Part shown: positions 36,271 to 63,575 of the stretch, piece by piece | Layout: each line of letters begins with the position of its first letter | Position numbering within the stretch: the first letter of the stretch is position 1 | IMG/VR virus record: IMGVR_UViG_3300030108_006260 | Span: 176,444-240,443 of that record | DNA: 64,000 nt | Direction: 5' to 3' (one strand) | The notes under the pieces: generated by a model | What the model was told of the DNA's origin: nothing | Seen by the model: only the letters and a program-made list of their open reading frames with translations | Database searches by the model: none | Made by a program: the position numbers and the translations under genes

Positions 36271-36531
36271 ATGTCAAAACGACTTAAAAGACTTAGAGTT
36301 CTATCTAAAAAGTTAGATTCTCTTCTGGATAGGGGTGAAAACCTCAGGTTTCCTCGTGATCCAGATAAAACAGTAGATGAGAATGTGCCCGTAAGCCCTC
36401 ATGGGTTTCCGGGCATTCTCACTGATACCATGGGAGGCCCAGGTAGTGCCCGGCATAGGGAACACCAAGCTCCTGGGCCTCGTGGTATAGCCTCCTCGGA
36501 AGAAGAGGAAGAAGAGGAAAAGGATGACTAG
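36271..36531 (+). CDS. Hypothetical protein
   Basis: 86-aa ORF with KRLKRLRVLS leader. Confidence 0.5.
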   Translation: MSKRLKRLRVLSKKLDSLLDRGENLRFPRDPDKTVDENVPVSPHGFPGILTDTMGGPGSARHREHQAPGPRGIASSEEEEEEEKDD

Positions 36532-37129
36532 GGAAAATCCCTTTAAAAATCTATCATCTGACCAGAGAGAACTTATAGAGAAAGCCTACGAGTCGGGACA
36601 GTCTCCTGAGGAGATAGGTATAAAGTTCGAGCTGGACTTTGACGATGTACGGTTTTATTGTGAAAACTTCATCACACCTCCTAAATCTAGGTATGAGAGA
36701 CTGCAAGAGATTGTATCAGATCTAGAAAGCACGACAGAGCAGTGTAGGCATCGTATTGACAGCGGGAGCCAAGACTCTGCAATGATGATACAGTCATATC
36801 AGAGGCTTATGTCCGAGTACCGTGTTGCACTTGCGGAGTTGGATGAAGTTAAGACCCCCACTGATGTAGTTGAGGACATCGTAAAGAAAGTCCTGAACCC
36901 ATTTGTAATAGGAATAGCAAAGGTGTCCACAGAGGAGACTAAGAAGCTACAAGAGGAGCTGATTAAGCTAAACGTACCTAGTAGAGATGCTAAGGGTATG
37001 TCTGAAGAGATTTTTCGTAGGCTAATGGCCAACGTAAAAACAAACTTGGTAGATGCTGAACGTGCATTGAATGGGTACTATGGAATAAAGTCGAAGAAGA
37101 ATGACGACATCATGGGAGGCATACGATGA
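36524..37129 (+). CDS. Putative terminase small subunit
   Basis: N-terminal HTH (GQSPEEIGIKFEL) then coiled coil; upstream of the large terminase. Confidence 0.45.
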   Translation: MTRENPFKNLSSDQRELIEKAYESGQSPEEIGIKFELDFDDVRFYCENFITPPKSRYERLQEIVSDLESTTEQCRHRIDSGSQDSAMMIQSYQRLMSEYRVALAELDEVKTPTDVVEDIVKKVLNPFVIGIAKVSTEETKKLQEELIKLNVPSRDAKGMSEEIFRRLMANVKTNLVDAERALNGYYGIKSKKNDDIMGGIR

Positions 37130-37428
37130 ATCCTCAGATAAAAGCTAGACTTGCCCATGTTGCTTCTAATGTCCGGTTACTAGAAAAATTTTCTAAAATT
37201 TTACTAGCAGAGATCAGTACGTCTGATGAAGTACTGAGAGATCTTGGAGTAGTCGAGGACACCGAGAACGAAGAAGATGAGTGCGACATGTCCCTGGATC
37301 CTATGGATTGTGGCATGGACGATGGATCTGTCCCTGCGGGCCCCAGGAACGAGCCAAACAAATCCATTTACCAGGTGTCCACAGGACATGGACAGTCTAC
37401 AGTAGATATGTTCACTTCTGTTGCCTGA
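37126..37428 (+). CDS. Hypothetical protein
   Basis: 100-aa ORF with IKARLAHVAS leader. Confidence 0.55.
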   Translation: MNPQIKARLAHVASNVRLLEKFSKILLAEISTSDEVLRDLGVVEDTENEEDECDMSLDPMDCGMDDGSVPAGPRNEPNKSIYQVSTGHGQSTVDMFTSVA

Positions 37429-46174: not shown

Positions 46175-48412
46175 ATGATAAGTAAAATTCAGAAAGCCCA
46201 AGCTAGGGTAGATAAAGCTGTACCTGACAGGTACCAGGTTGTTGCTCTCGAAGGCGAAGGAAAGCAAAAGAAAGCTACCGTTTTAGATAAAGAAAGGGAA
46301 GTACAGTTTACTTATGACTTAGATTCCCTAGTCAAAAGACTCAGGAAAGATCCTTCCCTAATCTTTGGTAAGACCGACGAAGAAGACATAGAGGAAGTAC
46401 AGCAGCGTATAAATTCTATTGTTAGCTGGTACAAAGTAGTAAGAGTACTTCGTGAAGAAAAGTACCCAAGAGTTCATCTAACTGACCTTAGATGCGGAAC
46501 CACATTTAGTTACATCCTAAATCAATTTGTATCAAATCTTAAGAAGAACCCAGATAGAGTATTCTTTTCTGCTAAAAGAGGAAATGTACTTTCAGTAAGA
46601 AACAACAAAGACCCTTTGCTTTTTCAGGCACAAGAGAGACTGAAGGAGGCAGGAGGTAAAAATCTTAAAGTTATATCCTACGATACAGAGACTGATAAGG
46701 CAACTATTCTAGACGAGGAAACAGAAGCGATAGATTCTTTTTCCTTTAAACACCTTTTATCAAATCTTAGAAGAGGAACCTCTTCAGGTAGGATAGAGAG
46801 CCCCCTATCAAAAGCCAGGATAATTGAAACCCTTACGCCTGGCCGTTTTACTATAATAGAAGCATTTTCAGATCGTCTATCAGGTAAAACAATCGTTGTT
46901 ATTCGAGACAAAGAAACAGGAGTCCGGTATAGAAACCTACTTTCCTATATTAAGTCTGCTCTAGAGAAAGATCCCTCTTACGTATTTGGGAGAACTCAGG
47001 ATGAGATTAACGATATCAGGAAAAGCACGAACTTGGAGCGACACGGAGTCGAGTTTCCTCTTCAGTCGGATGAGATAAAGGAAAAAATGAAGAGGACGCT
47101 CCAAGAAAAGTATGGAGTGGATAACTACTCTCAGACAGATGATTACGTGGAGTCGTTCAGAAGAACGAGCCTAGATCGCTATGGTGTTGAACACCCTATG
47201 AAATCAGAAGAAATTAGAAAACGGGCGATATCTAATTCATTAGAAAAGTACGACGGGATACACCATACTCAACACCCAGATGTCGTGTCTAAGATCCGAT
47301 CCACGAACCAAGAAAGGTATGGTGTAGACACTCCTCTGGAATCAAAGGAGATACAAGAAAAAGCGCTTAAGTCCCTTGAGAAGAACTGGGGAGTGACCAA
47401 TCCCCAGTTGCACCCTGACATTAGGGAAAGGACGTTCCAGACCAACGTAGAGAACGGTCGATTCACTTTATACGAGGGAAAAACAGTCCCTCAGATTGCA
47501 GATGAAATTGGATCTGGGATAGGATATGTACGTAGGCTCATATCTCGATTAGGGTATGAAGGGGCCAAACCTCTTTTCGATCAATATGAGCCAGGAGGTT
47601 CAACCCTTACACGATATACAGTATCTTTGTTCGGGGACAGGGACAATCTAATTGTAGACCGTAAACTAGAGGGCACTTCCTTTCGTCCAGATCTCTGCTT
47701 CCCTGAAGCTAAGGTCATCGTAGAAGCAGACGGACTATACTGGCACAGTGAGGGATCTAAGACTGAATCGTGGAATCCTAACTCCACGTACCATAAGAGA
47801 AAGCTCAAAGCCTATGAAGATGAGGGATATCGTGCTCTCTTCTTCCGTAGCGATGAGATTTATGAGAAGCCCGAAATCGTCAGAAGTATCACACTGAATG
47901 CTCTTGGAGAAAACGAACGTAGAGTCTTTGCGCGCAAGTGCTCCATCCAAGAAATCAGCCCTGACTTCTTTGACAGAGTACATCTTATGGGCAAAGGATC
48001 GGGCAGATGTTACGGACTCGTTCTTGATGGTGAAGTTCAGGCCGGTATCCAGGTTAGGTGGGTCAAAAAGAAGGCAAAACTACTTGATGTAAGTAGATTT
48101 GCTACCGCACCTTCTACATCAGTTGTAGGAGGATGGTCTAGGCTCATCAAGCACGTCTCTAAAGTAGAGAAGCCGCACACTATTCAAACCTTCATCGACC
48201 GTAGGTACGGGACGGGAGCGCATCTATCTTCACAGGGGTGGGTAAAGAGGACAGAAGAACCTAGCTTCCGTTGGACCGATGGTATTATGTCCCTCCACCG
48301 CATGAAATTTCCTGGTAATACAGGGTATGAGAACGGGTTCTTTAAGATATGGGACTGTGGTCAGGCTAAATGGACGTTATCTTTACCCAGTGGACACCTC
48401 GACTCGAATTAG
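46175..48412 (+). CDS. Free-standing Hef-like homing endonuclease 1 (repeats + Vsr-like nuclease + GNAT/Mom-like domain)
   Basis: TNLERYGV-type repeats; FRPDLCFP...VEADGLYWHS nuclease; RVFARKC...HLMG...SRFAT...VVGG...WDCGQ C-domain. Confidence 0.75.
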   Translation: MISKIQKAQARVDKAVPDRYQVVALEGEGKQKKATVLDKEREVQFTYDLDSLVKRLRKDPSLIFGKTDEEDIEEVQQRINSIVSWYKVVRVLREEKYPRVHLTDLRCGTTFSYILNQFVSNLKKNPDRVFFSAKRGNVLSVRNNKDPLLFQAQERLKEAGGKNLKVISYDTETDKATILDEETEAIDSFSFKHLLSNLRRGTSSGRIESPLSKARIIETLTPGRFTIIEAFSDRLSGKTIVVIRDKETGVRYRNLLSYIKSALEKDPSYVFGRTQDEINDIRKSTNLERHGVEFPLQSDEIKEKMKRTLQEKYGVDNYSQTDDYVESFRRTSLDRYGVEHPMKSEEIRKRAISNSLEKYDGIHHTQHPDVVSKIRSTNQERYGVDTPLESKEIQEKALKSLEKNWGVTNPQLHPDIRERTFQTNVENGRFTLYEGKTVPQIADEIGSGIGYVRRLISRLGYEGAKPLFDQYEPGGSTLTRYTVSLFGDRDNLIVDRKLEGTSFRPDLCFPEAKVIVEADGLYWHSEGSKTESWNPNSTYHKRKLKAYEDEGYRALFFRSDEIYEKPEIVRSITLNALGENERRVFARKCSIQEISPDFFDRVHLMGKGSGRCYGLVLDGEVQAGIQVRWVKKKAKLLDVSRFATAPSTSVVGGWSRLIKHVSKVEKPHTIQTFIDRRYGTGAHLSSQGWVKRTEEPSFRWTDGIMSLHRMKFPGNTGYENGFFKIWDCGQAKWTLSLPSGHLDSN

Positions 48413-50914: not shown

Positions 50915-51844
50915 ATGGCAAAGCAAGACGCAGCAGCCTTACGAGCAGCCCGACAGAAGCGAATCGCATCGCGGACAAAGGGCACACAGTCTAATCCCGC
51001 AACCAAGACCGCCGCACCCACCGAGAAAGCGCCTGCGACCGCTCCTTCGGTACTTACCGCAGCAGTTTTGGACCCTCAGTCCGTAACTAAGACTGCCGAA
51101 ATCGATCTCATCGGTTACGGCCAGGCCCAGGATCCTTTCTGGGTTGTCCTAGCTAACGGTCGTCCTGTAGCTGAGATTCGTCTCAGCGATCAGGAAGATC
51201 CCTCTGGGATCGCCAAGCTCTTCGTGGGAGAGCAGTACGCCGCAGGCGTACGTGAAGCTGCTAAGCAGTTTCCATTCTCTGAGGTTCTAGAAGGTGTTCG
51301 CGCCCGTCCCTACCAGGCATCGGTTGCCACGGATGACGCGTACCGCACCATCGAAGCCAAGCTTACCGAGAAGCACGATGTTGCTCTTCGTGAGGCAAAG
51401 GCAAACGTCAGAGACGACATGTCCAACATGTTGAACCTCGTAGTTCTTGCACAAAACAAGAACTTCCTCCGCGAGAATCCTCTCAAGGACGAGCTTTTCC
51501 GTCGCATGGCGTCGGCAGGCATCGAGGACAGCAGGGCAATCGCCCTTATTGAAGGAGCCTTCCAGGCCCGAGCACCTGAGCACTTCGAAATCTGCTTCAA
51601 GCAGGCTATGAAGTGGATGGATCTTACTCCTCAGGCTCTCGGTGAACTTGAGGAGCAGATTAAGGATCTCGGATACCGTCAGCCTGTTGCTGCCGCTTCT
51701 GATGAGATTCGTGCAGCTTCTGCTGCTGCCCCCTCAGGCTCTCATAACGTCCCTCTCTACACCCGTACCGCAGGTAGCAATGCTGCTTCCAGCGAGAAGG
51801 AAGACATGAGGGCTGCTATGGGATTTGGTCGCCGCCAAAACTAA
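50915..51844 (+). CDS. Putative capsid scaffold protein
   Basis: Ala-rich helical protein with strong codon bias, just upstream of decoration and capsid genes. Confidence 0.5.
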   Translation: MAKQDAAALRAARQKRIASRTKGTQSNPATKTAAPTEKAPATAPSVLTAAVLDPQSVTKTAEIDLIGYGQAQDPFWVVLANGRPVAEIRLSDQEDPSGIAKLFVGEQYAAGVREAAKQFPFSEVLEGVRARPYQASVATDDAYRTIEAKLTEKHDVALREAKANVRDDMSNMLNLVVLAQNKNFLRENPLKDELFRRMASAGIEDSRAIALIEGAFQARAPEHFEICFKQAMKWMDLTPQALGELEEQIKDLGYRQPVAAASDEIRAASAAAPSGSHNVPLYTRTAGSNAASSEKEDMRAAMGFGRRQN

Positions 51845-51876: not shown

Positions 51877-52587
51877 ATGGCATTCGATACAACCCGATCA
51901 TATTTCAATGATCTTCGTGAACGTCCCGTAGCTGATGGTGCTTCCGTCAGCGAAGAGGGACAGGTTCTTGTGTACGTTACTTCGGGATCCGGCTCCCTTG
52001 CTGTTCAGCCTTCGGCTGGTGCAGCTAACGAGCGTGTCGCTGGTTTCGCTATCACAGACGCCCTTAAGCTTGTTACCAAGTCTGTAGTCGAGGAGCTTGT
52101 CGTTCCCACCGGTGGTGGTACCGTCGACCTTCGCAACCAGGCACTCGTAACGGGTTCCACCCGTGCTTACGATGTCACCGCCGCTGGCGCTCTTGCTCTT
52201 ACCGGAGCAGCACCCGCAGCTGGTGAGTACCAGCCTAACCTTGCCCAGGGTACAGTAACGTTCAACGCTGCTGAAGCTGGTAACACCGTTCGCGTCTTCT
52301 ATCGCTACAGCCCAACGCTTGAAGAGATTCTTGCTACGGACCACGAGCGTCCCATCAACAACCGTGCGCAGGACTTCTTCTCCTCGGTTTCCGTTGGCTG
52401 TCTAGACGGCGAAATCTTTACGACAATGTATGACACGAGTCAGACATACGCCGTAGGAGCTACCATTTACTCCGGCGCTGGTGGTCTATGCACCGCTGCC
52501 GCAGGCGGAACAGCTCTTGGCTTCGTATCCCAGGAGCCTTCCGTCGCTGACGGTCTTCTTGGTGTGAAGTACGCTAACCTTAGCTGA
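51877..52587 (+). CDS. Head decoration / minor capsid protein
   Basis: Strong RBS, Ala/Gly/Thr-rich beta protein, TTMYDTSQTYAVGATIY...G.V...P (beta-tulip-like). Confidence 0.65.
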   Translation: MAFDTTRSYFNDLRERPVADGASVSEEGQVLVYVTSGSGSLAVQPSAGAANERVAGFAITDALKLVTKSVVEELVVPTGGGTVDLRNQALVTGSTRAYDVTAAGALALTGAAPAAGEYQPNLAQGTVTFNAAEAGNTVRVFYRYSPTLEEILATDHERPINNRAQDFFSSVSVGCLDGEIFTTMYDTSQTYAVGATIYSGAGGLCTAAAGGTALGFVSQEPSVADGLLGVKYANLS

Positions 52588-52593
52588 TCTAGC

Positions 52594-52649
52594 GCCGCAA
52601 TCGCGGCTTTTTGGGAATGGCCTCGCTTTATGCGGGGCTTTTCTCTTTT
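52594..52649 (+). terminator. Two tandem rho-independent terminators
   Basis: GCCGC-aatc-GCGGC-TTTTT and GCCTCGC-tttat-GCGGGGC-TTTTCTCTTTT. Confidence 0.75.
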
Positions 52650-54174
52650 AAACCACACGTTCCCACCTGGCCTGACCACAGTCCCATATCTTAACCAGTC
52701 CCTCCTCATACCCAGATTCTTTAGGGTATCGCATACGATGAAATGTAGACCTCAAGTCTGTCCATGCAAAGGAAGTATTTTCACTGAGTCTTTTCCACCC
52801 TAGACTTTTAAGGTATTTTCCGTCTCCATACCTTCTATCTACGTAGGTTCGAATAGAGTTCGGAGACTCTTTATTGATCACATGTTTGATTAGCTTACTA
52901 AATCCGCCTACAACAGAGTATCCAGGTGCAGTACAGAATCTAGAGATGTCCATAAATTTTTTATTTCTTGTAATCCAACGAACTCTGATTCCTGCCACAA
53001 CCTTTCCATTGTGATAAAGGCCGTATCTTCTACCCATACCCCTACCCATCAAGTGGTTGTTCTGGAAGAACTCTACGGGGGCCTCATCTACCGTTGTGTT
53101 CCTGGCGTATACTCTAATGGACTTCCCTAGTTTATTGTCTATAATTGATTTTACTACATGAGGAGAATTTCGTATCTCGTCACCTCTGAAGAATAGGCTA
53201 TTCACTCCTACTTCATCGTACAATACCTTTTTATCTCTGTGATATTCTGATGAGCAATTTAGTTCACTATGCCAGTATAGTCCGTCGCACTCTACTACTA
53301 GGTTTCTTTCGGGTATGTAGAAGTCCGGCTTGAAAGATGTACCAGAGAGCTGCTTGTCTCTCACCACATTAAATCCTTTGAAGAAAGGAAGAACCATTTC
53401 TTCTAATGACGATCCTTTCTTTGGAGATGATACAATCGCATGGATTTGTTCTCTGGAGTAGTTTCTTTTAAGGAAATAAAGGTGACTCTTAGAGTACCCT
53501 GTACTTTCTGCTACGTCATCCACTTTTTTTCCCAATATACTTACAGGTTTACGAGGATTCCACGTCTCGTTTACGAGCATGCTTCTCAGCCTGTATGATT
53601 CTTCGGATACAGTTACATCCGACACATTATCAGTGACTGTAACATAGAACCTATTTTTGGATCTCCTAACGCTCTTTACTGAGACACGGTCCTTTGAAAT
53701 TAGGTCATATTCCTTTTGCCATTTGTCCCTAAGACTATCTTCGTCAGGTATAAACCTGTGGCTTTTATTTTTGGAAGATTTTACGAAGCTCTTCCAATCG
53801 CATTCAAAGTAGTACTTGTGCAACGCGTCATAGAACCTGAACCGGGGGTTATCGCCTTCTTCTCCTAGGCTCTCTTTAATGGAATACCTCAAATGGTCCG
53901 TAGAACTTTCTTTAATGTAGGCATTGTGCCTAGCAATTATGTCTACTGCGTTCTTTGGCCAAGTTCTATCAGGATTAGACTTTAATGCCCTATAAAAAGA
54001 ATCCCAGGCTACCTTTATTGTGTAGTCTTCGTACCTGTCTCTTATCGTAACCGTGTGTTTCGTCCGTATTCTTTGTCCCTCACGAACTTCTTCGCTGTCC
54101 ACTTGTTTGATAACAAACCTTTGGCGAGACACAGCATCAACTTTTAGCTGTAGATCTTCTATTCTACCAGTCAT
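52648..54174 (-). CDS. Free-standing Hef-like homing endonuclease 2 (antisense in the head operon)
   Basis: FKPDFYIP...VECDGLYWHS; RVYARNT...HLMG...SRFCT...VVGGFSKL...WDCGQ. Confidence 0.75.
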   Translation of the reverse strand: MTGRIEDLQLKVDAVSRQRFVIKQVDSEEVREGQRIRTKHTVTIRDRYEDYTIKVAWDSFYRALKSNPDRTWPKNAVDIIARHNAYIKESSTDHLRYSIKESLGEEGDNPRFRFYDALHKYYFECDWKSFVKSSKNKSHRFIPDEDSLRDKWQKEYDLISKDRVSVKSVRRSKNRFYVTVTDNVSDVTVSEESYRLRSMLVNETWNPRKPVSILGKKVDDVAESTGYSKSHLYFLKRNYSREQIHAIVSSPKKGSSLEEMVLPFFKGFNVVRDKQLSGTSFKPDFYIPERNLVVECDGLYWHSELNCSSEYHRDKKVLYDEVGVNSLFFRGDEIRNSPHVVKSIIDNKLGKSIRVYARNTTVDEAPVEFFQNNHLMGRGMGRRYGLYHNGKVVAGIRVRWITRNKKFMDISRFCTAPGYSVVGGFSKLIKHVINKESPNSIRTYVDRRYGDGKYLKSLGWKRLSENTSFAWTDLRSTFHRMRYPKESGYEEGLVKIWDCGQARWERVV

Positions 54175-54835: not shown

Positions 54836-55957
54836 ATGTCAAGCCCATACGCTTCTGGTCCCGGTGTTAAAGTAATTCGAGGAACCGATATTCCTGCTAC
54901 CTCGCAGGACGGTCTTCGCGGAGGAATCCGCACCGCTGGCCGCACCATGGTTTCTGATGGACCCGCTTTCGGATCTAACGGAGAAATCAACGCTTCTTCT
55001 AAGCGCGAACTCATGCAGTCGATTGGTCACGTTGTGCACCAGTCTCGTCAGAGTGTCATGACGCGCCAAGCTTCTGCTGAGGTTCAGCAGCAGCGCCTTG
55101 CAAGCCTTCGTGAGGCTTACGCCGACAAGAGCGGAACCAAGTTCCAGGTTCTTGGTGAGGTTATCTCCGAGGAAATCTGGGAGACCCTTGGTCGTGAAGG
55201 TTTTTCCCGTCGTCTCCTTTCCGTTATGCCCCTCGCTAAGGGACAGACCGGTCGAGTAAAGGTACGTCGTAAGGATGTTGTTGCTTATCAGGTCACCACT
55301 GACGTGAAGATCACCGAGCAGCGCATTCGTCAGCCCTACGTATATCCTCCCGAGTTCTACCTCGGTGCCCAGATCCTCATCGAGGACAAGGAAATCGAGC
55401 AGGCATCCACTGACCTCCTTGACGCTAAGTTCCAGGACGGTCTTGAGGCTATCCTTCGTCGTGAGGACCTTATCACCCGCGCTCTTATGACTCGTGCAGC
55501 AACGACGTTCAACGACCTCGTTCTCTTCACCACGTTCAACCCGAGCGTTCTTACAACCCTCCGTACCCAGGTCAACCGCTGGGGTACCCCGGCCGCTACC
55601 ATGGTCATCGCTTTCGACATCTGGGATGACATCATCGCAGACGCCGACTTCGTTGCATGGTGGGACCAGGTCCACAAGCATGAGTTGATCCTTGAGGGTC
55701 GTCTTGGTAGCATGCTCGGAATGGAAATCATCACGGATGGTTACCGCTACGACACCCTCCAGGTTCTTGAGCCTGGTGAGGTCTTCGTTACCGCTTCTCC
55801 TGTTACCGTTGGTTCCATCGTTCAGCGTAAGGAACTCGACAGCCGCGCAATCGACCAGTACAACCTTGGTCGTCCTGCTCGTGGTTGGTTCATGGAGCAG
55901 ATCCAGGGACAGGTGATCGTCAACGGCCGCGCCGTCGACCGTGGTATCCGTGTCTGA
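54836..55957 (+). CDS. Major capsid protein (HK97 fold)
   Basis: 373 aa, strong codon bias, REGFSRRLL, VYPPEF, EAILRRED, GRLGSMLGMEII, RGWFM; followed by a strong terminator. Confidence 0.85.
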   Translation: MSSPYASGPGVKVIRGTDIPATSQDGLRGGIRTAGRTMVSDGPAFGSNGEINASSKRELMQSIGHVVHQSRQSVMTRQASAEVQQQRLASLREAYADKSGTKFQVLGEVISEEIWETLGREGFSRRLLSVMPLAKGQTGRVKVRRKDVVAYQVTTDVKITEQRIRQPYVYPPEFYLGAQILIEDKEIEQASTDLLDAKFQDGLEAILRREDLITRALMTRAATTFNDLVLFTTFNPSVLTTLRTQVNRWGTPAATMVIAFDIWDDIIADADFVAWWDQVHKHELILEGRLGSMLGMEIITDGYRYDTLQVLEPGEVFVTASPVTVGSIVQRKELDSRAIDQYNLGRPARGWFMEQIQGQVIVNGRAVDRGIRV

Positions 55958-55980
55958 TAAGTAGACGCTCTTTTGAGTTG

Positions 55981-56013
55981 AAAAGGCCCAGGTCTCTTGA
56001 CTTGGGCCTTTTT
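55981..56013 (+). terminator. Rho-independent terminator after MCP
   Basis: AAAAGGCCCAGGTC-tctt-GACTTGGGCCTTTTT. Confidence 0.85.
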
Positions 56014-56025
56014 CAATTGTATAGT
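55997..56025 (+). promoter_or_regulatory. Sigma70-like promoter for endonuclease 3, overlapping the MCP terminator
   Basis: TTGACT-17-TATAGT, 9 bp before ATG 56035. Confidence 0.6.
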
Positions 56026-56034
56026 GACCTGTCG

Positions 56035-57549
56035 ATGACCAAGGTGTCTCAGGAGTATGTTCTTCGTAGACTCTCGGAAGGAGCATCGTTAACCCTCATT
56101 GCTCGTGAACTCAAAGTCAGCCCTTCTACCCTAAAAAGGAAGGTAGACTTACCCAAGCAGGGTACCTTAGAATGGTATCGTATCAAGTTTCCGGACGCTG
56201 GGGTCGAGTCAGTGGAAGAAGGGAAGCTGATCCTTTCTGAAGGACGGAGAGTGTCACCGGGTGAGCTACGTCAGGAGAGTTCTTTCATATCTAATAAGGA
56301 CCGTCTACTTCAGCGGTGGGCCCGTGGGGACAGTATTAGTACCATCGCTAAAGAGCTAAAGACTTCAAGGACTAGACTAGCGCCCCGTCTAGGAATACCT
56401 CCTATAGGTACAGTCGACTATTACTCTTTTCTGCTTTCACTTCTTACTTCCTCAATTAAGGTGAAGGAACTGATCCCTGGAGATGTGGTTCAACTCGAAT
56501 GCAGGGACGTGAAGAGGGGTGTACAATTCACAGCGCCTGCCTGGTGGGTTGTTTCTAGGTTACGTAAAGATCCTGACTACACTTTCTTTCCAAGCCAAGA
56601 CGAAAGAAAGAGCAAGATGATTGCAAACGGTACGATTTCTACGATCAGCGGGATGACACTGCCTGCCTACGCTGAACAGGTCGGGGCCTCCTACGCTACT
56701 GTACACAAGAGGCTGTCTTTAGTAGGGGAAGAGAACGCTATTCGTTCTTTTGACGGGTACTCCACCAGGGAAAGCACCCTAGAGTCTATGGTGTCCTCTT
56801 GGGTGGAGGACGTAGGCTGTTCTTTCGTGCGTAATAACAAGCTAGAGGGAACATCGTACCTCCCTGACCTCGTTGTGCATTCTAGGCGGCTGGTTATTGA
56901 ATGTGATGGTCTCTACTGGCACTCAGAAGCTCAAAAGGAAAAGAACTATCATCGAGACAAGAAGCTAACATACCAGAACCTTGGGTATAAATCAATCTTT
57001 CTTAGGGAAGATGAATTGCTCAAGTCGCCTGACATATGTCGAAGTATTATACTTAATCACCTAGGGTCTAACAGAAGGGTGTACGCTAGAAAGACCACTG
57101 TCTCCTCAGGGGGAAGAGATTTTATCTCGCAAAATCACTTGATGGGAAAGGGGAAGGGTACAACATGGTCCCTCATTTCAGGAGATGACATCGTTGCTGC
57201 TATGCAAGTTCGGTGGGTATCCAGAGATAAAGGTATACTTGACATCTCTAGGTTCTGTTCTTCTCCTGGTGTTACTGTGGTAGGGGGATTTTCTAAGCTG
57301 ATAAAGCATGTCACAGAAGAAATGAAGCCTAATTCTATACAGAATTTCATAGACCTGCGCTACGGGTCGGGCAGCTACCTGCGTGGGATGGGGTGGAAGT
57401 CTCACAGAACTTACCTATCATTCAGGTGGACAGACTGTAGAGGTAACACGTTCCATAGAATGAGGTACCCAGGTAAAACTGGATATGAACATGGTCTTTT
57501 GAAAATATGGGACTGTGGACAAGCCAAGTGGACTTTAGACCTGTCCTAG
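56035..57549 (+). CDS. Free-standing Hef-like homing endonuclease 3 (HTH + Vsr-like + GNAT/Mom-like)
   Basis: Two HTHs (SLTLIARELKVSPSTL; SISTIAKELKTS), YLPDLVV...IECDGLYWHS, RVYARKT...WDCGQAKW; likely start ATG 56035. Confidence 0.75.
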   Translation: MTKVSQEYVLRRLSEGASLTLIARELKVSPSTLKRKVDLPKQGTLEWYRIKFPDAGVESVEEGKLILSEGRRVSPGELRQESSFISNKDRLLQRWARGDSISTIAKELKTSRTRLAPRLGIPPIGTVDYYSFLLSLLTSSIKVKELIPGDVVQLECRDVKRGVQFTAPAWWVVSRLRKDPDYTFFPSQDERKSKMIANGTISTISGMTLPAYAEQVGASYATVHKRLSLVGEENAIRSFDGYSTRESTLESMVSSWVEDVGCSFVRNNKLEGTSYLPDLVVHSRRLVIECDGLYWHSEAQKEKNYHRDKKLTYQNLGYKSIFLREDELLKSPDICRSIILNHLGSNRRVYARKTTVSSGGRDFISQNHLMGKGKGTTWSLISGDDIVAAMQVRWVSRDKGILDISRFCSSPGVTVVGGFSKLIKHVTEEMKPNSIQNFIDLRYGSGSYLRGMGWKSHRTYLSFRWTDCRGNTFHRMRYPGKTGYEHGLLKIWDCGQAKWTLDLS

Positions 57550-57596: not shown

Positions 57597-57629
57597 GAGG
57601 TGCCCACTTTTGGGGGCGCCTATTTCTTT
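57597..57629 (+). terminator. Possible terminator
   Basis: GGTGCCC...GGGCGCC followed by TATTTCTTT. Confidence 0.4.
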
Positions 57630-58326: not shown

Positions 58327-59042
58327 GTTTTTATAGCAGGATACTGGCTGTAGCAGGAATTAAATCAGCTGCTGCTAAGAAAAAGAAGACTACCAAGAAG
58401 TCGCCTAAGAAGACGCCTAAGAAGTCGCCTAAGAAGACTACCAAGAAAACAACTCCTTCTGTGGAGGATGCGTTTTACGCTCTACGCACCTGCTTGCACA
58501 GTGACCTTGGAAAAGGGACTGGATCGAGAGAGATGCGCCTCCTAGATCGTATAAAGTACGCTTTAGAGGTAGAGGGGTATAAGCTAACCACCTCTACTAA
58601 TGAACCAGGGTCAATGCCCAAGACACCTAGTAGACTAAGTTCTTCCACTCACTTTGTAGCTAGCGGTGGTATGTGTACTCTTATAAGAGGATCTGCTCCT
58701 GAGGGATTAGACATCAATGCTGTAGTATCTCTTTCCGACTTGTTTCGTAGTAAGCAGTGCTACAAGTGCACCATAGACCCATCTGATAACACTAACTCCA
58801 GGTCTCGTGGTGCAAACATGGCGCTTCCTAAGCCAGTTACCTGGCATAAGCTGCAAAAGTATGGGCTCTCTGTTGAGAATGTACTTGATGATGAGGGTAA
58901 AGTGCTACTAAAGAAGTACACTATCGAAGGAGTGAGTAGTTACACTGTAGATAGTCATACATTTTTTATGTCAAATAAAGAAAAGTTCCGCCGATGGATG
59001 GACGGACTTGATAGGTCAATCTCTAACTACCTAGAAAAGTAA
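58323..59042 (+). CDS. Protein with histone H1-like (S/T)PKK repeats
   Basis: KKKKTTKKSPKKTPKKSPKKTTKKTTP after leader YSRILAVAGIKSAA. Confidence 0.55.
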   Translation: MSFYSRILAVAGIKSAAAKKKKTTKKSPKKTPKKSPKKTTKKTTPSVEDAFYALRTCLHSDLGKGTGSREMRLLDRIKYALEVEGYKLTTSTNEPGSMPKTPSRLSSSTHFVASGGMCTLIRGSAPEGLDINAVVSLSDLFRSKQCYKCTIDPSDNTNSRSRGANMALPKPVTWHKLQKYGLSVENVLDDEGKVLLKKYTIEGVSSYTVDSHTFFMSNKEKFRRWMDGLDRSISNYLEK

Positions 59043-60436
59043 TGCTATCCTTCGTCAAAAAAGCAACTGTGCAGGATGCAGAGTCCGCAGCAAGGATTTA
59101 TTCCCAGTACCTTAATAGGGACGTAGACCTAAGCGTAGACTTTAATTCGATTCCTGTTAGTCTTTTGGATGCGCAGGCTGACGACGGAGTTTTGTACCTT
59201 AAGTTTTCTTGGCAAGCGGAAGATATAGGTAATGATTATAGAATTATTAGGAGTAAACTGGGTAAGGAAGTACGAGTACGCATAAACTCTGAAGAAATGG
59301 TAGGAGTCTTAGGTACAACAACGGAGATTCCTCCAGGTGCTGACATGGACACCTATAAAAATTCTCCATTTGTTCTGGCTATGACTTTTCCTTCTTCTAA
59401 GTTTGCTTCTTTTAAGGGCTCCATCATAGGAATCGACGTTCCCTCTAACATCCGGGACCTTCTTCCCATAGCAGATGACTTAGAGTACGATCCTCACATT
59501 ACAGTTGCCTTCTTCCCTAACCTAAGTACAGAAGATATACCTCTGGTACTCAGGGCAGCTAAAGAAGCCGCTAAGAAAGTTGGGTCCTTTTCTGTACGTG
59601 TTACCCAAAGCAAGACGTTTCCTACTCCTGACGAAGAAGGTAACTATCCTCATGTAGCTCTTATCGAAAGTGATGAGCTTAGATTTATGCATGAGGAGAT
59701 AGTACGCGTGCTAGAGCACTATTCTCCAGGATTAGTAAGTACTGATTTTGTTGGTAAGAACTACAATCCTCACATTACTCTTAAGTATTCTAAGAATCCA
59801 TCGTCTTACTCTCCCATTAAAGAGCTGAAGTGGAGCGTAGACTCTATGTTCCTGTCTTACAGAGGAGGGGACGAGTTTTTCCCTATACCCCTTAGTGGTG
59901 AAAAGTGTGCCTCAGGTGGGGGATCCATACAAGTAGGTGATGTGACGATTCCTGTCATGTCAGTAAATGACAACGACAACATAATATCTATAAATTTAGA
60001 GAGAGGCAAACACTCTGACTTAGTATCTACATGTGAGGGGCAACAAGTTACGTTGTCTACCCCCTCTTACAATAAAAAGATACAGATTTTAGAGGTTTCC
60101 GAAGAAGGTCCCGATCGCTTCTCTTTATCTTATCGTCCCTTAGTTACTTATATGTCAAAAAAGTCACGGTACCTACTCATAAAGGTGTCTAACCTCCTTG
60201 AGTTGAGAGGGTTTACCGCTTTATCTAAGCGTGTGGCTTCACTTTTAGACTTTTCTCCTGAGGAATCTGAATCAGAGGGGACTGAAGAGGAAGAACCAGA
60301 AGACGTAGACGCCCTAGGACCGGGCTTTCCCGGAACTGACCCCCGCATCGTAACTTATGTTAAGGCTCCACAGACTACTCAAACTATTGACGAGCCAAAG
60401 TTCCCTATGACCTTACCCCTGCACGAGAGAATTTAG
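59042..60436 (+). CDS. Multidomain protein with central 2H phosphoesterase (2'-5' RNA ligase / Acb1-like) domain
   Basis: Two HxT motifs: DPHITVAF and NPHITLKY. Confidence 0.8.
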   Translation: MLSFVKKATVQDAESAARIYSQYLNRDVDLSVDFNSIPVSLLDAQADDGVLYLKFSWQAEDIGNDYRIIRSKLGKEVRVRINSEEMVGVLGTTTEIPPGADMDTYKNSPFVLAMTFPSSKFASFKGSIIGIDVPSNIRDLLPIADDLEYDPHITVAFFPNLSTEDIPLVLRAAKEAAKKVGSFSVRVTQSKTFPTPDEEGNYPHVALIESDELRFMHEEIVRVLEHYSPGLVSTDFVGKNYNPHITLKYSKNPSSYSPIKELKWSVDSMFLSYRGGDEFFPIPLSGEKCASGGGSIQVGDVTIPVMSVNDNDNIISINLERGKHSDLVSTCEGQQVTLSTPSYNKKIQILEVSEEGPDRFSLSYRPLVTYMSKKSRYLLIKVSNLLELRGFTALSKRVASLLDFSPEESESEGTEEEEPEDVDALGPGFPGTDPRIVTYVKAPQTTQTIDEPKFPMTLPLHERI

Positions 60437-60439
60437 CAA

Positions 60440-61279
60440 ATGGATAAAGAAATCAAGAAGATGTACACGGCATCCGCCCGTCTACAGCGTGTCGTGTACA
60501 ACGACTTTATGGAAAAGACAGCGAATCCCGCAATTATGGGTATAGCACGTGCTTTGCTTCCAGCACTCAAGTCACTTGGTCCTCAGGTCCTGAAGCTTGT
60601 TGCTAAAGTACCTCCTGCTGCGTGGGCTAACATCATTCCTACTATAGTACGTGGCATAGCTCCTAAGGAAAACCCTGCTGGGGTAACCGCTTCTTCGTCC
60701 AGCAAGGAGGCATTTGGTCCTGCCGCTGGTCTTGCCATGCGTATGCTTGCACCTGCTGCACTGGACATGGTTATGGGTGACGATGACGAGCCAGAGGATA
60801 TGGATGCATCTTCTGAAAATGAAGAGGACATGGACGAGGATAAAGAAGGTATTGCTCCTCTTGCTGGTCTAGCCCTCAGTACGCTCGCTCCCATGGCTCT
60901 AGACTCTCTTATGGGAGACGATGACGAAGCCACTACAGCTTCTAAGAACGATGAAAACGACGAAGATGAGGATGAGGACAAGGAGGGCTTAGGGCCCTTG
61001 GCTGGACTGGCACTCAGTACTCTTGCTCCTATGGCTATTGACTCCATCATGGGAGACGACGATGAGGCTACAACAGCTTCCGCACACTGTGAGGTAATCG
61101 AAACTGTCCTCAAGAAGCACAAGGTTGCTCATGCAGAAATTGTGGCCAAGTCTCTTTACCTTGCGGCCCTTGAGACCAGAAATTCCCATAAAAAGAAGCC
61201 ACGTAAGGCTGTAGCAGAGGCAGTCAAGCTCGTGCAACGGATGCAGGACGAGCTTGAGGCACTCAGGGCTTACCTATAA
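60440..61279 (+). CDS. Repeat protein: amphipathic/hydrophobic peptides separated by acidic spacers
   Basis: Three PxAGLA...LAP.A.D..MGDDDE units plus one cationic amphipathic segment. Confidence 0.65.
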   Translation: MDKEIKKMYTASARLQRVVYNDFMEKTANPAIMGIARALLPALKSLGPQVLKLVAKVPPAAWANIIPTIVRGIAPKENPAGVTASSSSKEAFGPAAGLAMRMLAPAALDMVMGDDDEPEDMDASSENEEDMDEDKEGIAPLAGLALSTLAPMALDSLMGDDDEATTASKNDENDEDEDEDKEGLGPLAGLALSTLAPMAIDSIMGDDDEATTASAHCEVIETVLKKHKVAHAEIVAKSLYLAALETRNSHKKKPRKAVAEAVKLVQRMQDELEALRAYL

Positions 61280-62100
61280 TGGATCCGCTTTCTCTAGAAC
61301 AGCAGAAACAGGCAATTTCGTCTGCTTCTAAGACTCTTTTATGGGAAATTCTAGAGGAAGAAGGCGCTTGGCTTAAGGTTCTGGGGGTTCTTCCTAGGGA
61401 ATACTTCGACTCTTTTCTCTCTGCTCTTAGGAGAGCAGGAGTTACAGGAGAGAATACGAACAAAGTTCGAGCACATGCATCTATGTTCGTAAAGAACAAG
61501 GTAAGCCTTCCTCACTTGCAGGCTGCCCTTGTGCAGGCATGGAATCCTTCCGACCTTAAAGACTCTGCTTCTTGGTTGAAAGAGAAGGGATTTTTGTCTA
61601 CTCCTCTGTCTCCTCTTACTGTAGATGACAAAAAGGAGATAGTAAAGTCCGCAAGTTCTGTTCCCTCTGCTACAAAAGAGAGAATGCTCCGTCAGGCAGG
61701 AGGTAAAAAACCAAGATCAAACCACCCTCCTGACGGTGCTTCTTTAGAGGGCCGTAAACTGTGGAACAGAGTCCTGAGGAATCCTGGTAGAAGAAAAATC
61801 ATTTTTGGCCCCAAGTCTCTGAGTGACCAGTGGTCTCTCGCTACTAAGTTTTGGCTAAAAGAATGTGCAGATCAGGGTGTTGCCCCCTATAAATCGGACG
61901 CGGAATCTAGCTCTAAGTCCATGCACGCTCAGAATGTCATAAGTAGAGCTATGCAAGAGCTACATGGGGGTCTATGTTACGATGGGTACTCTATGAGCCG
62001 TCCTGCGGCTCGCGCCTATAAGAAGCTATGGCGCCAGCTAGAACGAGATGGTGTTTCGTTAGGAAGTTGGACCTCTATAAAGCCTAAGAGAAAAATCTAA
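61279..62100 (+). CDS. Hypothetical protein
   Basis: 273-aa ORF with 1-bp overlaps to neighbours. Confidence 0.6.
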   Translation: MDPLSLEQQKQAISSASKTLLWEILEEEGAWLKVLGVLPREYFDSFLSALRRAGVTGENTNKVRAHASMFVKNKVSLPHLQAALVQAWNPSDLKDSASWLKEKGFLSTPLSPLTVDDKKEIVKSASSVPSATKERMLRQAGGKKPRSNHPPDGASLEGRKLWNRVLRNPGRRKIIFGPKSLSDQWSLATKFWLKECADQGVAPYKSDAESSSKSMHAQNVISRAMQELHGGLCYDGYSMSRPAARAYKKLWRQLERDGVSLGSWTSIKPKRKI

Positions 62101-63575
62101 TGAGTATTTACGACGAGACAGAAAGTTACTCTATACACCTACAGAAGGTGGCGCACATGGTATTGTCGTCACCTGACATTAAGGTTGCTACACTTTCCAA
62201 GTTAGTGGGTGAAGCAGGTCTATTTGATAGGGAGCTAGCTTCCATACTTACGGTCCTTTACTCTCACAATAACTTAAGTGGAAGAGGCATGCCTGAGGCT
62301 AGCAAGCCCATTGTCCTTTTAAAGAGGATTGCAGAAGACCTACAGGACCGTGGATTCTATTTTCCATCGTTTTCTCGTAGGCTCAAGCACATCGAATCCG
62401 CTACAAATGGGTCTTTCGAGAGAAAAGAAGGGTCCCAGTACGGAGGCGGTGAGTCTCAAGCGCTAGACAGGCCCCTACGGTCTCTTAGAGAAAAGCTCTA
62501 CGAGGTTAGGCTCCATGATGCTGGGCACGCCAAAGATGAGGGTGGTAAGGACATAACAAAACGTACCGGAGAAGAGACTCTATCCATGGTGGAGAAGCTC
62601 ATAGGGGCTATTAAGACCTTAGAGACAGAGGGGTCTCCTTATGGAGTGAGTGATAGTTCGGACAGAGCTAACTCCCGTCGAAATGAATTCTTGGACAAGA
62701 GGTTCGATGAGTTCGGACAGAAGCTGAACTTCTCGGTAGGGTCTACCGCAGAGGGACAGAAGATAGAAATGTATCACCTGCACCCTGTCCACACCGAAGA
62801 TTTTGGAGAACGTACCTACGCAATATCCGAAGACAACTATGCCCTACTTGTTTCGGTTATGAGGAAAGCAGTTCCTGACTGGTCACCTTCCGAATCCTAC
62901 GCGTATGTGGACAATATTATTCCTCCTATCTATCCCTCTAAAGATAGGGGCAGATCTATCGAGTCACCCGACAGATCTACACAGAAGCAAAGAGAGCAAG
63001 AAGCGCAAAAAGAGAGGGACTTACTAACGTCTATCTCTCAGAAGGGTGAATACGATCAGTCTGTAGTCCGTACTATAAGGCTTCCCTTCGCTCCTGACCA
63101 GATAGACGACAACTTCCCCAGCCTGGAGCTTGACTCCGACACTTATATCGGACAAAACGTATCTAAGGTTGTTGTCGAAAGTATAAACCGGATGAGATTT
63201 TCGGGGTTCGTAGACTTTGATCAAGACTATCGAATGATGATAATGTGGGCGAACGCACCAAGTGACGATCACAAAGACGTCATGGGAAAAACATATAGAG
63301 ATTTACTAGAAAAAGTATTGAAGGCGTACTCTTCTAAGTTTGGTGACCTACTCAAGGTAAAGCCCGAGGTTAGGAAGATAAAAAGGGGTGCAGCCCTTTA
63401 CTTCCCCAAGCCCATAAGCCTACATGTTTTGGTAAAATCGTTCACTCCACTTCAAAACCTCCTAAACCAGACGAACGCAAGTATTGAGAACGCGGAAATA
63501 GCTCGTGGCCTTGAGAGGTCTTTCAACAGGGAGATCAACGATGATGAGCTTCCTGGACACATGGAGAATTCCTGA
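62100..63575 (+). CDS. Hypothetical protein (putative internal head protein)
   Basis: 491-aa ORF; HLQKVAH / IKVAT leader. Confidence 0.6.
   Translation: MSIYDETESYSIHLQKVAHMVLSSPDIKVATLSKLVGEAGLFDRELASILTVLYSHNNLSGRGMPEASKPIVLLKRIAEDLQDRGFYFPSFSRRLKHIESATNGSFERKEGSQYGGGESQALDRPLRSLREKLYEVRLHDAGHAKDEGGKDITKRTGEETLSMVEKLIGAIKTLETEGSPYGVSDSSDRANSRRNEFLDKRFDEFGQKLNFSVGSTAEGQKIEMYHLHPVHTEDFGERTYAISEDNYALLVSVMRKAVPDWSPSESYAYVDNIIPPIYPSKDRGRSIESPDRSTQKQREQEAQKERDLLTSISQKGEYDQSVVRTIRLPFAPDQIDDNFPSLELDSDTYIGQNVSKVVVESINRMRFSGFVDFDQDYRMMIMWANAPSDDHKDVMGKTYRDLLEKVLKAYSSKFGDLLKVKPEVRKIKRGAALYFPKPISLHVLVKSFTPLQNLLNQTNASIENAEIARGLERSFNREINDDELPGHMENS

Follow-up and report, generated by a model that had tools for sequence, protein, structure and literature searches.

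We have analyzed the gene at positions 60440..61279 (+ strand) of the window, i.e., the whole stretch of 64,000 nucleotides under study, from an uncultured marine giant phage, and found that it codes for a 279-aa protein that, judged from alignments, belongs to a small all-alpha family not described before, whose members have about 150-175 aa. Between its conserved ends the protein carries three tandem cassettes, each presenting a hydrophobic peptide of 22 residues in an acidic context, and the codon differences among them indicate strong purifying selection on the peptide. The cassette repeats clearly matter to the phage. The reading that we tentatively prefer is that of an internal-head protein whose disordered acidic loop would display several copies of a short motif for binding or targeting, with possible trimming by the prohead protease.

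The helical family and its tandem cassettes

The gene is complete, with 279 codons from the ATG plus a TAA stop, and head genes adjoin it. The exact protein was found on at least 24 contigs within the 32 blocks of the collection searched, and since it recurs across independent assemblies the ORF is not an assembly artefact. The + frame can be taken as the coding frame of 60440-61279 because both the homologs and the conserved synteny support it. All the peptides quoted by the original prediction were located in this ORF, with EKTA at residues 25-28. A cluster variant of 202 aa (P0024) was considered as a two-repeat allele and rejected; it looks like a frameshifted or chimeric assembly.

The family is confined to a clade of uncultured jumbo phages (jumbo myophages) from marine and other environments. 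Phmmer recovered ten homologs of the 279-aa protein with E-values from 6e-26 to 1e-6, and the homologs P0002-P0022 align to its residues 1-90 and 214-279, without its repeats. The hallmark of the family is an N-terminal block (K-T-A-N/H-P-A ... L-G-P-K ... P-P-x-x-W) together with a C-terminal three-helix block and the same gene neighbourhood, all of them present here. Some members bear an N-terminal ChaB domain: the profile (PF06150) was matched by the orthologs P0002 and P0020 (E 1.4e-12), and the reading frames of L048/L049 extend upstream into ChaB-like sequence. The 279-aa protein itself gave no ChaB match in Pfam, nor any other in Pfam, PHROG or NCBIfam. A literature search on ChaB returned only unrelated matches, and no cultured-phage homolog of the target or of two short homologs emerged when 50,697 phage records were searched by tblastn and megablast. 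A 1,928-aa repeat protein (P0006) that came up in the profile search was discarded as a spurious low-complexity match.

The N-terminal half of the helical domain (residues 1-75; 60440..60664, +) is supported by the alignments and by an AlphaFold model with pLDDT about 88-90 over residues 1-70, and contains a near-invariant K-T-A-N-P-A motif. The C-terminal half (residues 214-279; 61079..61276, +) is modelled as three helices with a conserved aromatic tail at the end (pLDDT about 82-94, residues 211-279). Both ends were thus predicted with high confidence, and most of residues 81-203 fell below 50 pLDDT. A short ortholog was modelled as one seven-helix domain (pTM 0.72). From alignments and models together, the N- and C-terminal thirds form the conserved helical domain, and the middle 130 residues are a lineage-specific, predicted-disordered insertion of three tandem cassettes in the interdomain loop. 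Foldseek searches with both AlphaFold models against PDB and BFVD gave nothing significant (best E 0.18-0.33, generic helical bundles), the top weak fold match being to the lipid-binding TIPE proteins (E 0.33, TM 0.42), and the ESM Atlas held nothing informative for one ortholog and both downstream neighbours.

The cassettes are preceded by the start of the variable interdomain linker (residues 76-84, K-E-N-P-A-G-V-T-A; 60665..60691, +) that ends at the first A|S junction. Cassette 1 (residues 85-123; 60692..60808, +) has SKE-A, a core at residues 92-113 (nt 60713-60778) and GDDDE...MDA. Cassette 2 (residues 124-167; 60809..60940, +) has an acidic spacer, DKE-G, a core at residues 138-159 (nt 60851-60916) and GDDDEATTA, and cassette 3 (residues 168-213; 60941..61078, +) repeats this order with its core at residues 184-205 (nt 60989-61054). 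The common plan is an acidic run, D-K-E, A or G, a peptide of 22 residues rich in Ala, Gly, Leu, Pro and Met, G-D-D-D-E and T-T-A-S (M-D-A-S in cassette 1). The three related hydrophobic peptides proposed in the original prediction were therefore confirmed, each with KE(A/G) before it (SKEA, DKEG and DKEG, in order) and, after it, an acidic spacer that closes with (T/D)AS (GDDDE...MDAS in the first, GDDDEATTAS in the other two). Tandem Repeats Finder reported a 138-nt period in the gene (1.8 copies, score 307), and a profile of the module matched the three copies in the protein with E-values from 6e-20 to 9e-22. These repeats are not due to chance.

Variation in repeat number among relatives, one of the checks that had been proposed, was indeed found: the copy number is 0, 1 or 3, and most orthologs have none. 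The linkers of P0002 and P0004 are purely acidic, without hydrophobic modules, and in most family members the linker is short and non-acidic. As a source of the module we considered an internal duplication of the 'NPAIAGLARALMPAL' helix of the family, which gave z = 5.4 for the P0020 module and z 1.3-2.4 for the repeats of the window. This is suggestive for the single copy of P0020 and weak for the window repeats, and we do not claim such an origin.

Selection on the cassette and its genomic context

Repeats 2 and 3 are identical at 33 of 38 residues (87%), and 20 of these 33 are written with different codons, where 19.8 would be expected for independent codon draws. The corresponding values were pN 0.09 and pS 0.88, and pN/pS was about 0.1 or lower in all three repeat pairs. 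The conservation of 33 residues while the synonymous sites have become fully randomised points to strong purifying selection on the peptide sequence of the cassette. The same numbers bear on the idea that the cassettes are a neutral low-complexity expansion, i.e., functionless products of slippage or recombination tolerated in a permissive loop. The insertion does sit in a loop that is variable and disordered, it occurs sporadically among relatives, and the genome is rich in mobile elements (homing endonucleases and inteins). However, neutrality is incompatible with full randomisation of synonymous sites next to such residue identity, and the low pN/pS of every pair, together with the conservation of the module across two different phages and two different proteins, largely refutes this explanation, which we consider highly improbable.

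The family gene is always found after a gene for a 2H phosphoesterase, within a late structural operon and a few genes downstream of the major capsid gene; L014, L016, L045 and L049 share this gene order. In the window the 279-aa gene lies four genes plus one homing endonuclease downstream of the capsid gene (54836..55957, +), within a series of overlapping genes. The gene just before it, which in every relative is that of a LigT-like 2H phosphoesterase, codes here for 464 aa (59042..60436, +). Downstream there are two conserved genes of 273 aa and 491 aa with no function assigned (61279..63575, +), whose overlapping start and stop codons are consistent with one operon. Among the products of the phage are tail-fibre-like, connector and very large structural proteins, and its capsid protein clusters with those of contractile-tailed jumbo phages. 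Synteny with PaBG was looked for and rejected, as nothing is shared beyond the capsid gene and a virion structural protein. No RNA sequencing runs containing the stretch were listed.

The cassette has traces in other proteins. In the relatives, the C-terminal acidic linker of the 2H phosphoesterase ends in 'EDKEALGPG', which is the junction that opens the cassette (acidic run-DKE-A-LGPG); at the shared junction the 2H protein of the window has EDVD in place of EDKE. A complete hydrophobic module was found in the acidic linker of P0013, a protein unrelated to the helical family that is encoded in a related phage between the TerS-like and TerL genes. The ortholog of its C-terminal part in the window, a 100-aa ORF also between the TerS-like and TerL genes (37126..37428, +), has only the acidic linker and no module. 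P0020, the family ortholog with one module copy, lies on a separate contig from P0013, and because both come from sequencing run SRR27364936 they probably belong to one genome. The flanks, KE before and T-x-A-S after, are conserved in 5/5 known copies of the module. Searches with degenerate DNA patterns recovered in IMG/VR only this phage plus five false matches in a non-coding frame, and in JGI metagenomes only this phage plus 19 chance matches. Acidic runs are limited in the window to a few proteins near terminase and head genes, with the exceptions of the SSB and of an ORF at 33974 (-).

This context could also suit a late helper that is not a virion component (such as a chaperone for assembly, a regulator or a factor associated with the membrane); while assembly or packaging proceeds, the modules would hold the 279-aa protein and P0013 for a time at the cell membrane or at a host protein. 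Several members are fused to ChaB, which points to a soluble domain of regulatory type; P0013, encoded beside the terminase genes, has a likely transmembrane helix; and the only fold matches are weak ones to helical bundles, with the TIPE proteins on top. Nevertheless, the module is strongly acidic on both sides, contrary to what is known of membrane-targeting helices and to the positive-inside rule, the gene is located inside a structural operon, and no family or fold match indicates any particular enzyme or regulator. We regard a helper of this kind as rather unlikely.

Peptide chemistry and candidate cleavage sites

The original prediction described the protein as a precursor of antimicrobial or lytic peptides, beginning with a cationic amphipathic segment. 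That segment, residues 29-74 in the N-terminal half of the domain, has a net charge of +5 and is amphipathic locally (moment 0.71 over 11 residues) but not over its whole 46 residues (0.18, with six prolines). It does not qualify as a separate cargo peptide, being a conserved part of the helical domain in all homologs, modelled at pLDDT about 90 and not flanked by spacers. Of the precursor plan the anionic spacers stood, whereas charge, amphipathicity, an N-terminal hydrophobic stretch and dibasic sites did not. The N-terminus is a charged helix with no stretch of the signal-peptide type (no 19-residue Kyte-Doolittle window above 1.0 before residue 39), and no dibasic (K/R-K/R) processing sites were found at the unit borders, which are K-E and A-S.

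The helical amphipathicity claimed for the repeats was found to be weak, with muH of 0.16-0.24 versus 0.35 in melittin and 0.45 in magainin, and their cores have a net charge of 0 or -1 versus +5 and +3. With their spacers, the A|S-delimited units reach -7, -12 and -13. The copies of the window have Kyte-Doolittle values of 1.24-1.42 (19-residue windows), below the usual transmembrane cut-off of 1.6; 1.42 is the maximum of the whole protein, versus 0.81 in the repeat-less ortholog P0015. Copies in relatives reach 1.56-1.65, and P0013 has a probable transmembrane helix (KD 1.93). Each window copy holds 4-5 Pro+Gly and no Trp or Tyr, and the only Phe is in repeat 1. By mean hydrophobicity (0.45-0.55) and low helical moment the repeats are nearer to the HIV and HA2 fusion peptides than to antimicrobial peptides. 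They are not AMP-like and, by composition, at most resemble fusion peptides.

We have looked for sites at which such peptides could be freed. The prohead maturation protease of the phage (phrog_18299; 45340..46065, +, with a 10-base N run at 45373-45382) has no BLAST similarity to T4 gp21, and no relative with a solved structure was found. The variable N-terminal region of the major capsid protein ends at (N/T)-G-E-(I/L/F)-N-(A/V), and the capsid alignment has an invariant G-E-x-N motif that is a candidate maturation site; the alignment does not indicate which bond is cut. The motif (N/T)GE(I/L/F)N appears nowhere in the 279-aa protein, nor in any other window protein besides the capsid protein, so that processing of the 279-aa protein by the protease is conjecture. 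The conserved K-E|(A/G) and A|S flanks are candidate cleavage sites only, and the literature on PaBG and Agrican357 phages held no cleavage data.

The core of the original prediction is that maturation cleavage would free membrane-active peptides stored in the head. In an adjusted form, the prohead protease would cut at K-E|(A/G) and/or A|S, leaving three fusion-peptide-like peptides per protein, stored in the head and kept soluble by the acidic spacers, that would perturb the host inner membrane at ejection. Several observations are in keeping with this: the conservation of the flanks in the known copies, the Gly/Ala-rich composition and hydrophobicity profile of fusion peptides, the strong purifying selection on the peptide, the higher Kyte-Doolittle values of the relatives' copies and the probable transmembrane helix of P0013. 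Besides, T4-type proteases cut after Glu (PMC9026906), and a peptide freed in this way would begin with Gly or Ala and continue into the hydrophobic stretch. The original prediction knew of no such description for tailed phages; chopped prohead core proteins (PMC9026906) and head-stored proteins that insert into membranes on ejection, such as T7 gp14/gp15/gp16 and P22 gp16 (PMC8954989), are already described. Against release stand the net charge, the Kyte-Doolittle values below 1.6, the content of Pro+Gly and scarcity of aromatic residues, the absence of the capsid-protein site motif and the contractile-tailed grouping of the phage, since envelope penetration is normally the task of the tail machinery (PMC8954989). 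Conservation would be expected of an essential device for membrane penetration, and with most orthologs lacking it, the module cannot be a core infection step in the clade. We consider this adjusted model possible, if unlikely. Its more elaborate version, a head-stored polyprotein whose fusion-peptide-like peptides, freed at K-E|G and A|S, would be ejected together with the DNA and destabilise or open the inner membrane, as a system adjustable in copy number and movable between packaged proteins, seems to us decidedly improbable.

The known systems that release or store membrane-active sequences resemble this protein in part. Melittin and magainin precursors, nodavirus gamma and adenovirus VI offer the likeness of tandem cargo with anionic spacers and conserved residues at the unit boundaries, but the cargo here is neutral or anionic, weakly amphipathic and not in the capsid protein. 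The influenza HA2 and HIV gp41 fusion peptides are likewise of ~20 residues, rich in Gly, Ala, Leu and Met, low in moment and neutral or anionic, and a K-E|G cut would put the module directly after a protease site; they belong, however, to a membrane-anchored glycoprotein of enveloped viruses, and the likeness is only compositional. The ejection proteins T7 gp14/gp15/gp16 and P22 gp7/gp20/gp16 are helical and capsid-stored, soluble globules that later insert helices into membranes (PMC8954989), and gp14-like proteins have about 200 aa. Unlike the present case, they act whole and have 2-5 predicted transmembrane helices, while no segment of the 279-aa protein reaches the threshold; neither is there a PHROG match, and the phage of the window appears to be contractile-tailed.

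A possible head-targeting motif

According to the reading that we prefer, with the reservation due to a tentative choice, the 279-aa protein would be packaged into the prohead and serve there as one of its core or internal proteins. Each cassette would act as a short linear binding motif, a sticker on an acidic tether, that anchors or targets the protein to a common partner in the prohead interior (the shell interior, the core or the portal). Its action might be like that of the T4 capsid-targeting sequence (CTS), with three copies adding avidity, and the prohead protease may later trim or free pieces at the candidate sites in the K-E and A-S flanks. This reading is favoured because the same module is shared by the unrelated P0013 and P0020, with a copy number of 0, 1 or 3, and because the 'acidic run-DKE-A-LGPG' junction recurs in the adjacent 2H phosphoesterase orthologs. 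The purifying selection, the operon position in the head region, a composition like that of T4 gp67, the conserved family with its shared synteny and the insertion in a loop between ends that AlphaFold models confidently also argue for it. It is weakened by the lack of a cultured-phage homolog, of a PHROG or Pfam match and of a relation to T4 gp68 or PaBG gp079, both of which were rejected as homologs by hhalign, and by the difference between an N-terminal CTS of ~10 residues and an internal module of 22; the EDVD of the window's own 2H protein also weakens it.

In T4, CTS peptides are common to otherwise unrelated packaged proteins (PMC9026906). The module resembles the CTS of IPI, IPII, IPIII and Alt in being shared by unrelated, putatively packaged proteins that probably belong to one phage, in an adjoining Glu that could serve as a prohead-protease site and in the linkage of the genes to the head module. 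The CTS, however, is N-terminal and single-copy, while the module is internal, has polyacidic flanks and occurs in up to three copies; moreover, it lies downstream and not upstream of the Glu, and there is no sequence similarity between the two.

T4 also provides the model for a scaffold or core filler, in which the acidic disordered loop would fill space and repel DNA, the hydrophobic segments would drive self-association of the core, and the whole would be degraded at maturation into pieces that leave or stay inert. In T4 the prohead protease chops each of the core proteins gp22, gp67 and gp68 into several fragments, most of which leave the head (PMC9026906). Like the 279-aa protein, gp67, gp68 and gp22 are small helical proteins among head genes, and gp67 has the same design of a helix followed by a long polyacidic tail. 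The purely acidic linkers of P0002 and P0004 and the position of most acidic runs of the window near terminase and head genes would also fit. But the T4 proteins have no hydrophobic repeats, hhalign against gp68 gave a probability of 0.4%, and no homology to known scaffold or core proteins was found. The acidic region is missing altogether in most members of the helical family, and their short, non-acidic linker indicates that the conserved role of the family needs no acidic filler. Other scaffold candidates are encoded between the protease and the capsid gene, and copies serving as a filler would not need to keep 87% residue identity once their synonymous sites are saturated. All considered, core filling looks improbable to us.

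To our knowledge, the sorting of proteins into the heads of large phages and their roles on ejection are largely unknown outside T4 and the phiKZ group. The locus described here is a compact, testable case: a selected peptide of 22 residues on an acidic tether, found in 0, 1 or 3 copies and, within one sample, in two unrelated proteins. If the module serves for targeting or anchoring, capsid targeting would have a second solution of a different structure, and the module might be used as a tag to load cargo into the heads of jumbo phages. If it is instead a released membrane-active peptide, it would represent a new entry mechanism for tailed phages, and the head-stored polyprotein of the more elaborate version would be the phage equivalent of the lytic peptides that non-enveloped eukaryotic viruses derive from their capsids. 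Either way, the adjacent 2H phosphoesterase is flagged as a possible packaged enzyme, and a new protein family is defined for a clade of uncultured environmental jumbo phages.

A triple repeat in a conserved phage protein family

The gene at 60440-61279 (+) is a 279-aa ORF that runs from ATG to TAA without interruption. We have found in its product all the strings from which the original prediction had derived a polyprotein releasing membrane-active peptides stored in the head, i.e., E-K-T-A (residues 25-28) and three related 22-residue hydrophobic peptides (92-113, 138-159 and 184-205) with K-E-(A/G) before and acidic spacers containing (T/D)-A-S after them. The residues preceding the peptides are S-K-E-A in the first copy and D-K-E-G in the second and third. 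Each peptide is followed by G-D-D-D-E and then by a spacer that closes in M-D-A-S, T-T-A-S and T-T-A-S, respectively. Taking the A-S junctions as borders leaves no remainder: an N-terminal block is followed by three units of 39, 44 and 46 residues and then by a C-terminal block. The units are acidic, with net charges of -7, -12 and -13. The repeat is beyond chance, with a 138-nt period (score 307) detected by Tandem Repeats Finder and matches of 6e-20 to 9e-22 between the three copies and a profile of the module (hydrophobic peptide plus acidic spacer). The identical protein is carried by at least 24 contigs, spread over 32 blocks of the collection; they stem from independent marine assemblies and reach a length of about 340 kb, so that the triple repeat is no assembly artefact. 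An antisense ORF of 179 aa (60583-61122) was discarded as a by-product of the compositional bias; the + frame is favoured by the homologs, by synteny and by the evolution of the codons.

Searched exhaustively with phmmer, a set of 1.84 billion representatives yielded 10 true homologs (147-233 aa, E 6e-26 to 1e-6), to which profile searching added nine members and IMG/VR two. The homologs all align with residues 1-90 and 214-279 and lack the triple repeat, the ortholog P0020 having a single module. Four relatives (L014, L016, L045 and L049) share one gene order around the family gene: capsid, ~118 aa, ~225 aa, a ~470-aa 2H phosphoesterase, the target family, ~275 aa and ~490-545 aa. The repeat-less homologs and the shared order indicate that the family is conserved and that the repeats are a lineage-specific insertion in its variable linker. 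The AlphaFold models agree with such an insertion: pLDDT was ~82-94 at residues 1-70 and 211-279 and below 50 over most of 81-203, and the 163-aa ortholog P0015 was modeled as one seven-helix domain (pTM 0.72). The segment predicted to be cationic and amphipathic is present as a proline-rich stretch of charge +5 (residues 29-74), but it equals helices 1-4 of the domain, a part where conservation is among the highest.

No names or Pfam domains were found among the members except an N-terminal ChaB (PF06150) in P0002 and P0020 (L045); the L048 and L049 frames extend upstream into ChaB-like sequence. The window protein, unlike several orthologs, has no ChaB domain, and a phage role for this domain was searched for and not found. 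The target and P0015 models had no significant structural neighbours in PDB or BFVD, and tblastn gave no homologs in cultured phages. The family is new; Pfam, PHROG, NCBIfam and the structure searches gave no match.

The head module and predicted maturation sites

The window is from a marine jumbo phage that has not been cultured and occurs in Tara Oceans and further marine metagenomes. Its head genes code for a TerS-like protein (36524-37129), a large terminase with an intein (37456-40752 (+), 1,098 aa), a portal with an intein-like insert (41607-45320 (+), 1,237 aa), a prohead protease (45340-46065), a virion structural protein (51877-52587) and the major capsid protein (54836-55957 (+)), which shares ~31-34% identity with its counterparts in the jumbo phages PaBG, Lu11, phiRSL1 and Vibrio GR11A. 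After a strong terminator-like hairpin (57598-57621), the genes from 57711 up to the end of the window follow one another with start and stop codons that overlap or abut; their products have 71, 118, 239, 464, 279 (the target), 273, 491 and 141 aa. The full contig continues this series by nine genes, up to a protein exceeding 2,000 aa. The new helical family lies within the structural operon.

Directly upstream of the target is a 464-aa 2H phosphoesterase or LigT-like protein (59042-60436 (+); PF13563 1.6e-10, PF02834 3e-9), which also matched Acb1, an anti-CBASS family, below threshold (E 7e-4). Its gene has the same position in all relatives, within the structural operon, and the product could be an enzyme that is packaged and injected to break down cyclic-nucleotide defence signals.

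The large inserts of terminase and portal each match endonuclease-type PHROGs. The TerL of a related phage (L015, 622 aa) aligns to 37486-38265 and 39523-40611, so that the ~1.25 kb it skips (roughly 38266-39522) is an intein-like insertion. Three homing-endonuclease genes, paralogs with a DUF559/Vsr-like nuclease domain (phrog_3339/559), also break up the module, at 46175-48412 (+), 52648-54174 (-) and 55885-57549 (+), the last of which, following the capsid gene, is missing in L014 and L016. Because of a 10-N run (45373-45382) in the 5' part of the protease ORF, its GTG start (45340) and first ~15 codons are uncertain. The 415-aa ORF antisense to the capsid gene (54839-56086 (-)), called in its place in some public assemblies (L002 and L007), is almost certainly a miscall. 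In a 309-aa head-module protein (50915-51844 (+)), V-(T/P)-K-T-A is conserved in three phages at residues ~55-62, directly after a variable N-terminal linker; K-T-A is near-invariant in the target family too, perhaps by chance or perhaps because the two have a recognition element in common. Outside this region, a 2,202-aa protein (22572-29180 (+)) gave many repeated tail-fibre-type PHROG matches, eight stretches of it to phrog_32829, and contains an exact internal duplication, the same 20-residue string at residues 514 and 1102.

T4-type prohead proteases cleave after Glu, the known motifs being L/I-x-E (T4), S/A-x-E (phiKZ) and A-x-E (SPN3US) (PMC9026906, PMC10052503). For the window protease we found no relative of solved structure, and BLAST showed no similarity to T4 gp21. 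Nine aligned capsid proteins (this clade, PaBG, Lu11, RSL1, GR11A, Sen-NF and Peetri) have a variable N-terminal region up to an invariant (N/T)-G-E-(I/L/F)-N-(A/V)-(S/G/A), at residues ~50-58 of the window protein. This is probably the maturation cleavage site in all jumbo phages of this group, with E or A/V as the residue preceding the predicted cut. The motif is absent from the other window proteins, target included, and cleavage data for it were not found in PMC7412058 or PMC6690015. In the cassette, the conserved borders between K-E and (A/G) and between A and S would be sensible candidate sites for a putative processing.

Distribution and selection of the cassette

The original prediction had proposed looking for variation of repeat number in relatives, and we found zero, one or three copies. 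Most family members have none and carry a short linker, in which (K/R)-x-A-S is conserved as a loop motif; P0002 and P0004 have an acidic linker without the hydrophobic module, P0020 an acidic linker with one module and the target an acidic linker with three. A near-identical single copy is found in P0013, a protein of 335 aa that is unrelated to the family and is encoded, in a related phage, between the gene for the TerS-like protein and that for TerL. P0013 and P0020 come from the same sequencing run and so probably from one genome. K-E, P, G-L-A, L-A-P, A and the following D are invariant in all five copies, and T-x-A-S plus an acidic run is common to P0013 and the window copies, P0020 having T-T-Q-A there. 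No further module came up in targeted scans of IMG/VR and JGI metagenomes. In three relatives (L014, L016 and L045), the C-terminal linker of the adjacent 2H phosphoesterase likewise contains the junction that opens the module (acidic run-E-D-K-E-A-L-G-P-G); the window's own 2H protein has E-D-V-D-A-L-G-P-G there.

The window ortholog of P0013 is a 100-aa ORF (37126-37428 (+)) with only an acidic linker at the module's place. This ORF and another at 36271-36531 (+), on either side of the TerS-like gene, both have polyacidic stretches, the one at 36271-36531 closing in G-I-A-S-S, seven Glu and K-D-D. Acidic runs occur in the window only in these two, the 2H protein, the target, SSB and an ORF at 33974 (-).

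Repeats 2 and 3 are identical at 33 of 38 residues, and 20 of these 33 use different codons (19.8 expected for independent codon draws), with pN 0.09 and pS 0.88; pairs including repeat 1 gave dN/dS of 0.09-0.15. Codons have been randomised while residues were kept, indicating an old duplication and strong purifying selection on the amino-acid sequence. Neutral low-complexity expansion, which we regard as very improbable, is essentially refuted by these values. The disordered loop insertion consists of three selected cassettes. The modular cassette of hydrophobic peptide and acidic tether, variable in copy number and strongly selected, is new, as is the sharing of the cassette by two unrelated proteins.

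Properties of the peptides and possible roles

The module cores have a net charge of 0 or -1, a helical hydrophobic moment of 0.16-0.24 and an Eisenberg mean hydrophobicity of 0.45-0.55. Melittin and magainin 2 have charges of +5 and +3 and moments of 0.35 and 0.45. By these values the peptides are unlike cationic amphipathic antimicrobial peptides, and the antimicrobial-type cargo originally proposed does not fit. The cores contain 4-5 Pro+Gly, no Trp or Tyr and one Phe (repeat 1). In composition they are nearest to Gly/Ala-rich fusion peptides such as those of HIV gp41 and influenza HA2; simple scales of this kind neither prove nor exclude membrane activity. The 19-residue Kyte-Doolittle maxima of the window cores were 1.24-1.42, below the usual transmembrane cut-off of 1.6, and those of the copies in P0013 and P0020 were 1.56 and 1.65; in P0013, a transmembrane helix is also probable at residues 57-75 (1.93).

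Prohead core proteins cut into peptides are classical biology in T4. For podophages, proteins that are kept in the head and later enter host membranes are well documented (PMC8954989). The general idea is thus not unprecedented in tailed phages. Recast as fusion-peptide-like, the release of membrane-active peptides is rather unlikely in our view: most orthologs lack the module, its hydrophobicity is sub-threshold and the phage is akin to contractile-tailed jumbo phages. Actual release of lytic or fusion-like peptides we consider improbable. A scaffold or core filler, degraded and then lost, seems unlikely, and we give the same low weight to a non-virion helper tethered to a membrane or host factor.

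Tentatively, we suggest that the target may be packaged as an internal-head or prohead-core protein, the reading that we favour over the others, though we do not hold it as probable. The cassette would be a short linear binding motif held on an acidic tether, by which the protein is targeted or anchored to a common prohead partner; three copies would provide avidity and the flanks might be trimmed later. The closest precedent is the capsid-targeting sequence of T4, common to unrelated packaged proteins and cut off by gp21 (PMC9026906), and T4 gp67, a core protein with helix and polyacidic parts, is a precedent in composition. We would place the target with the phage internal or core proteins that share short motifs.
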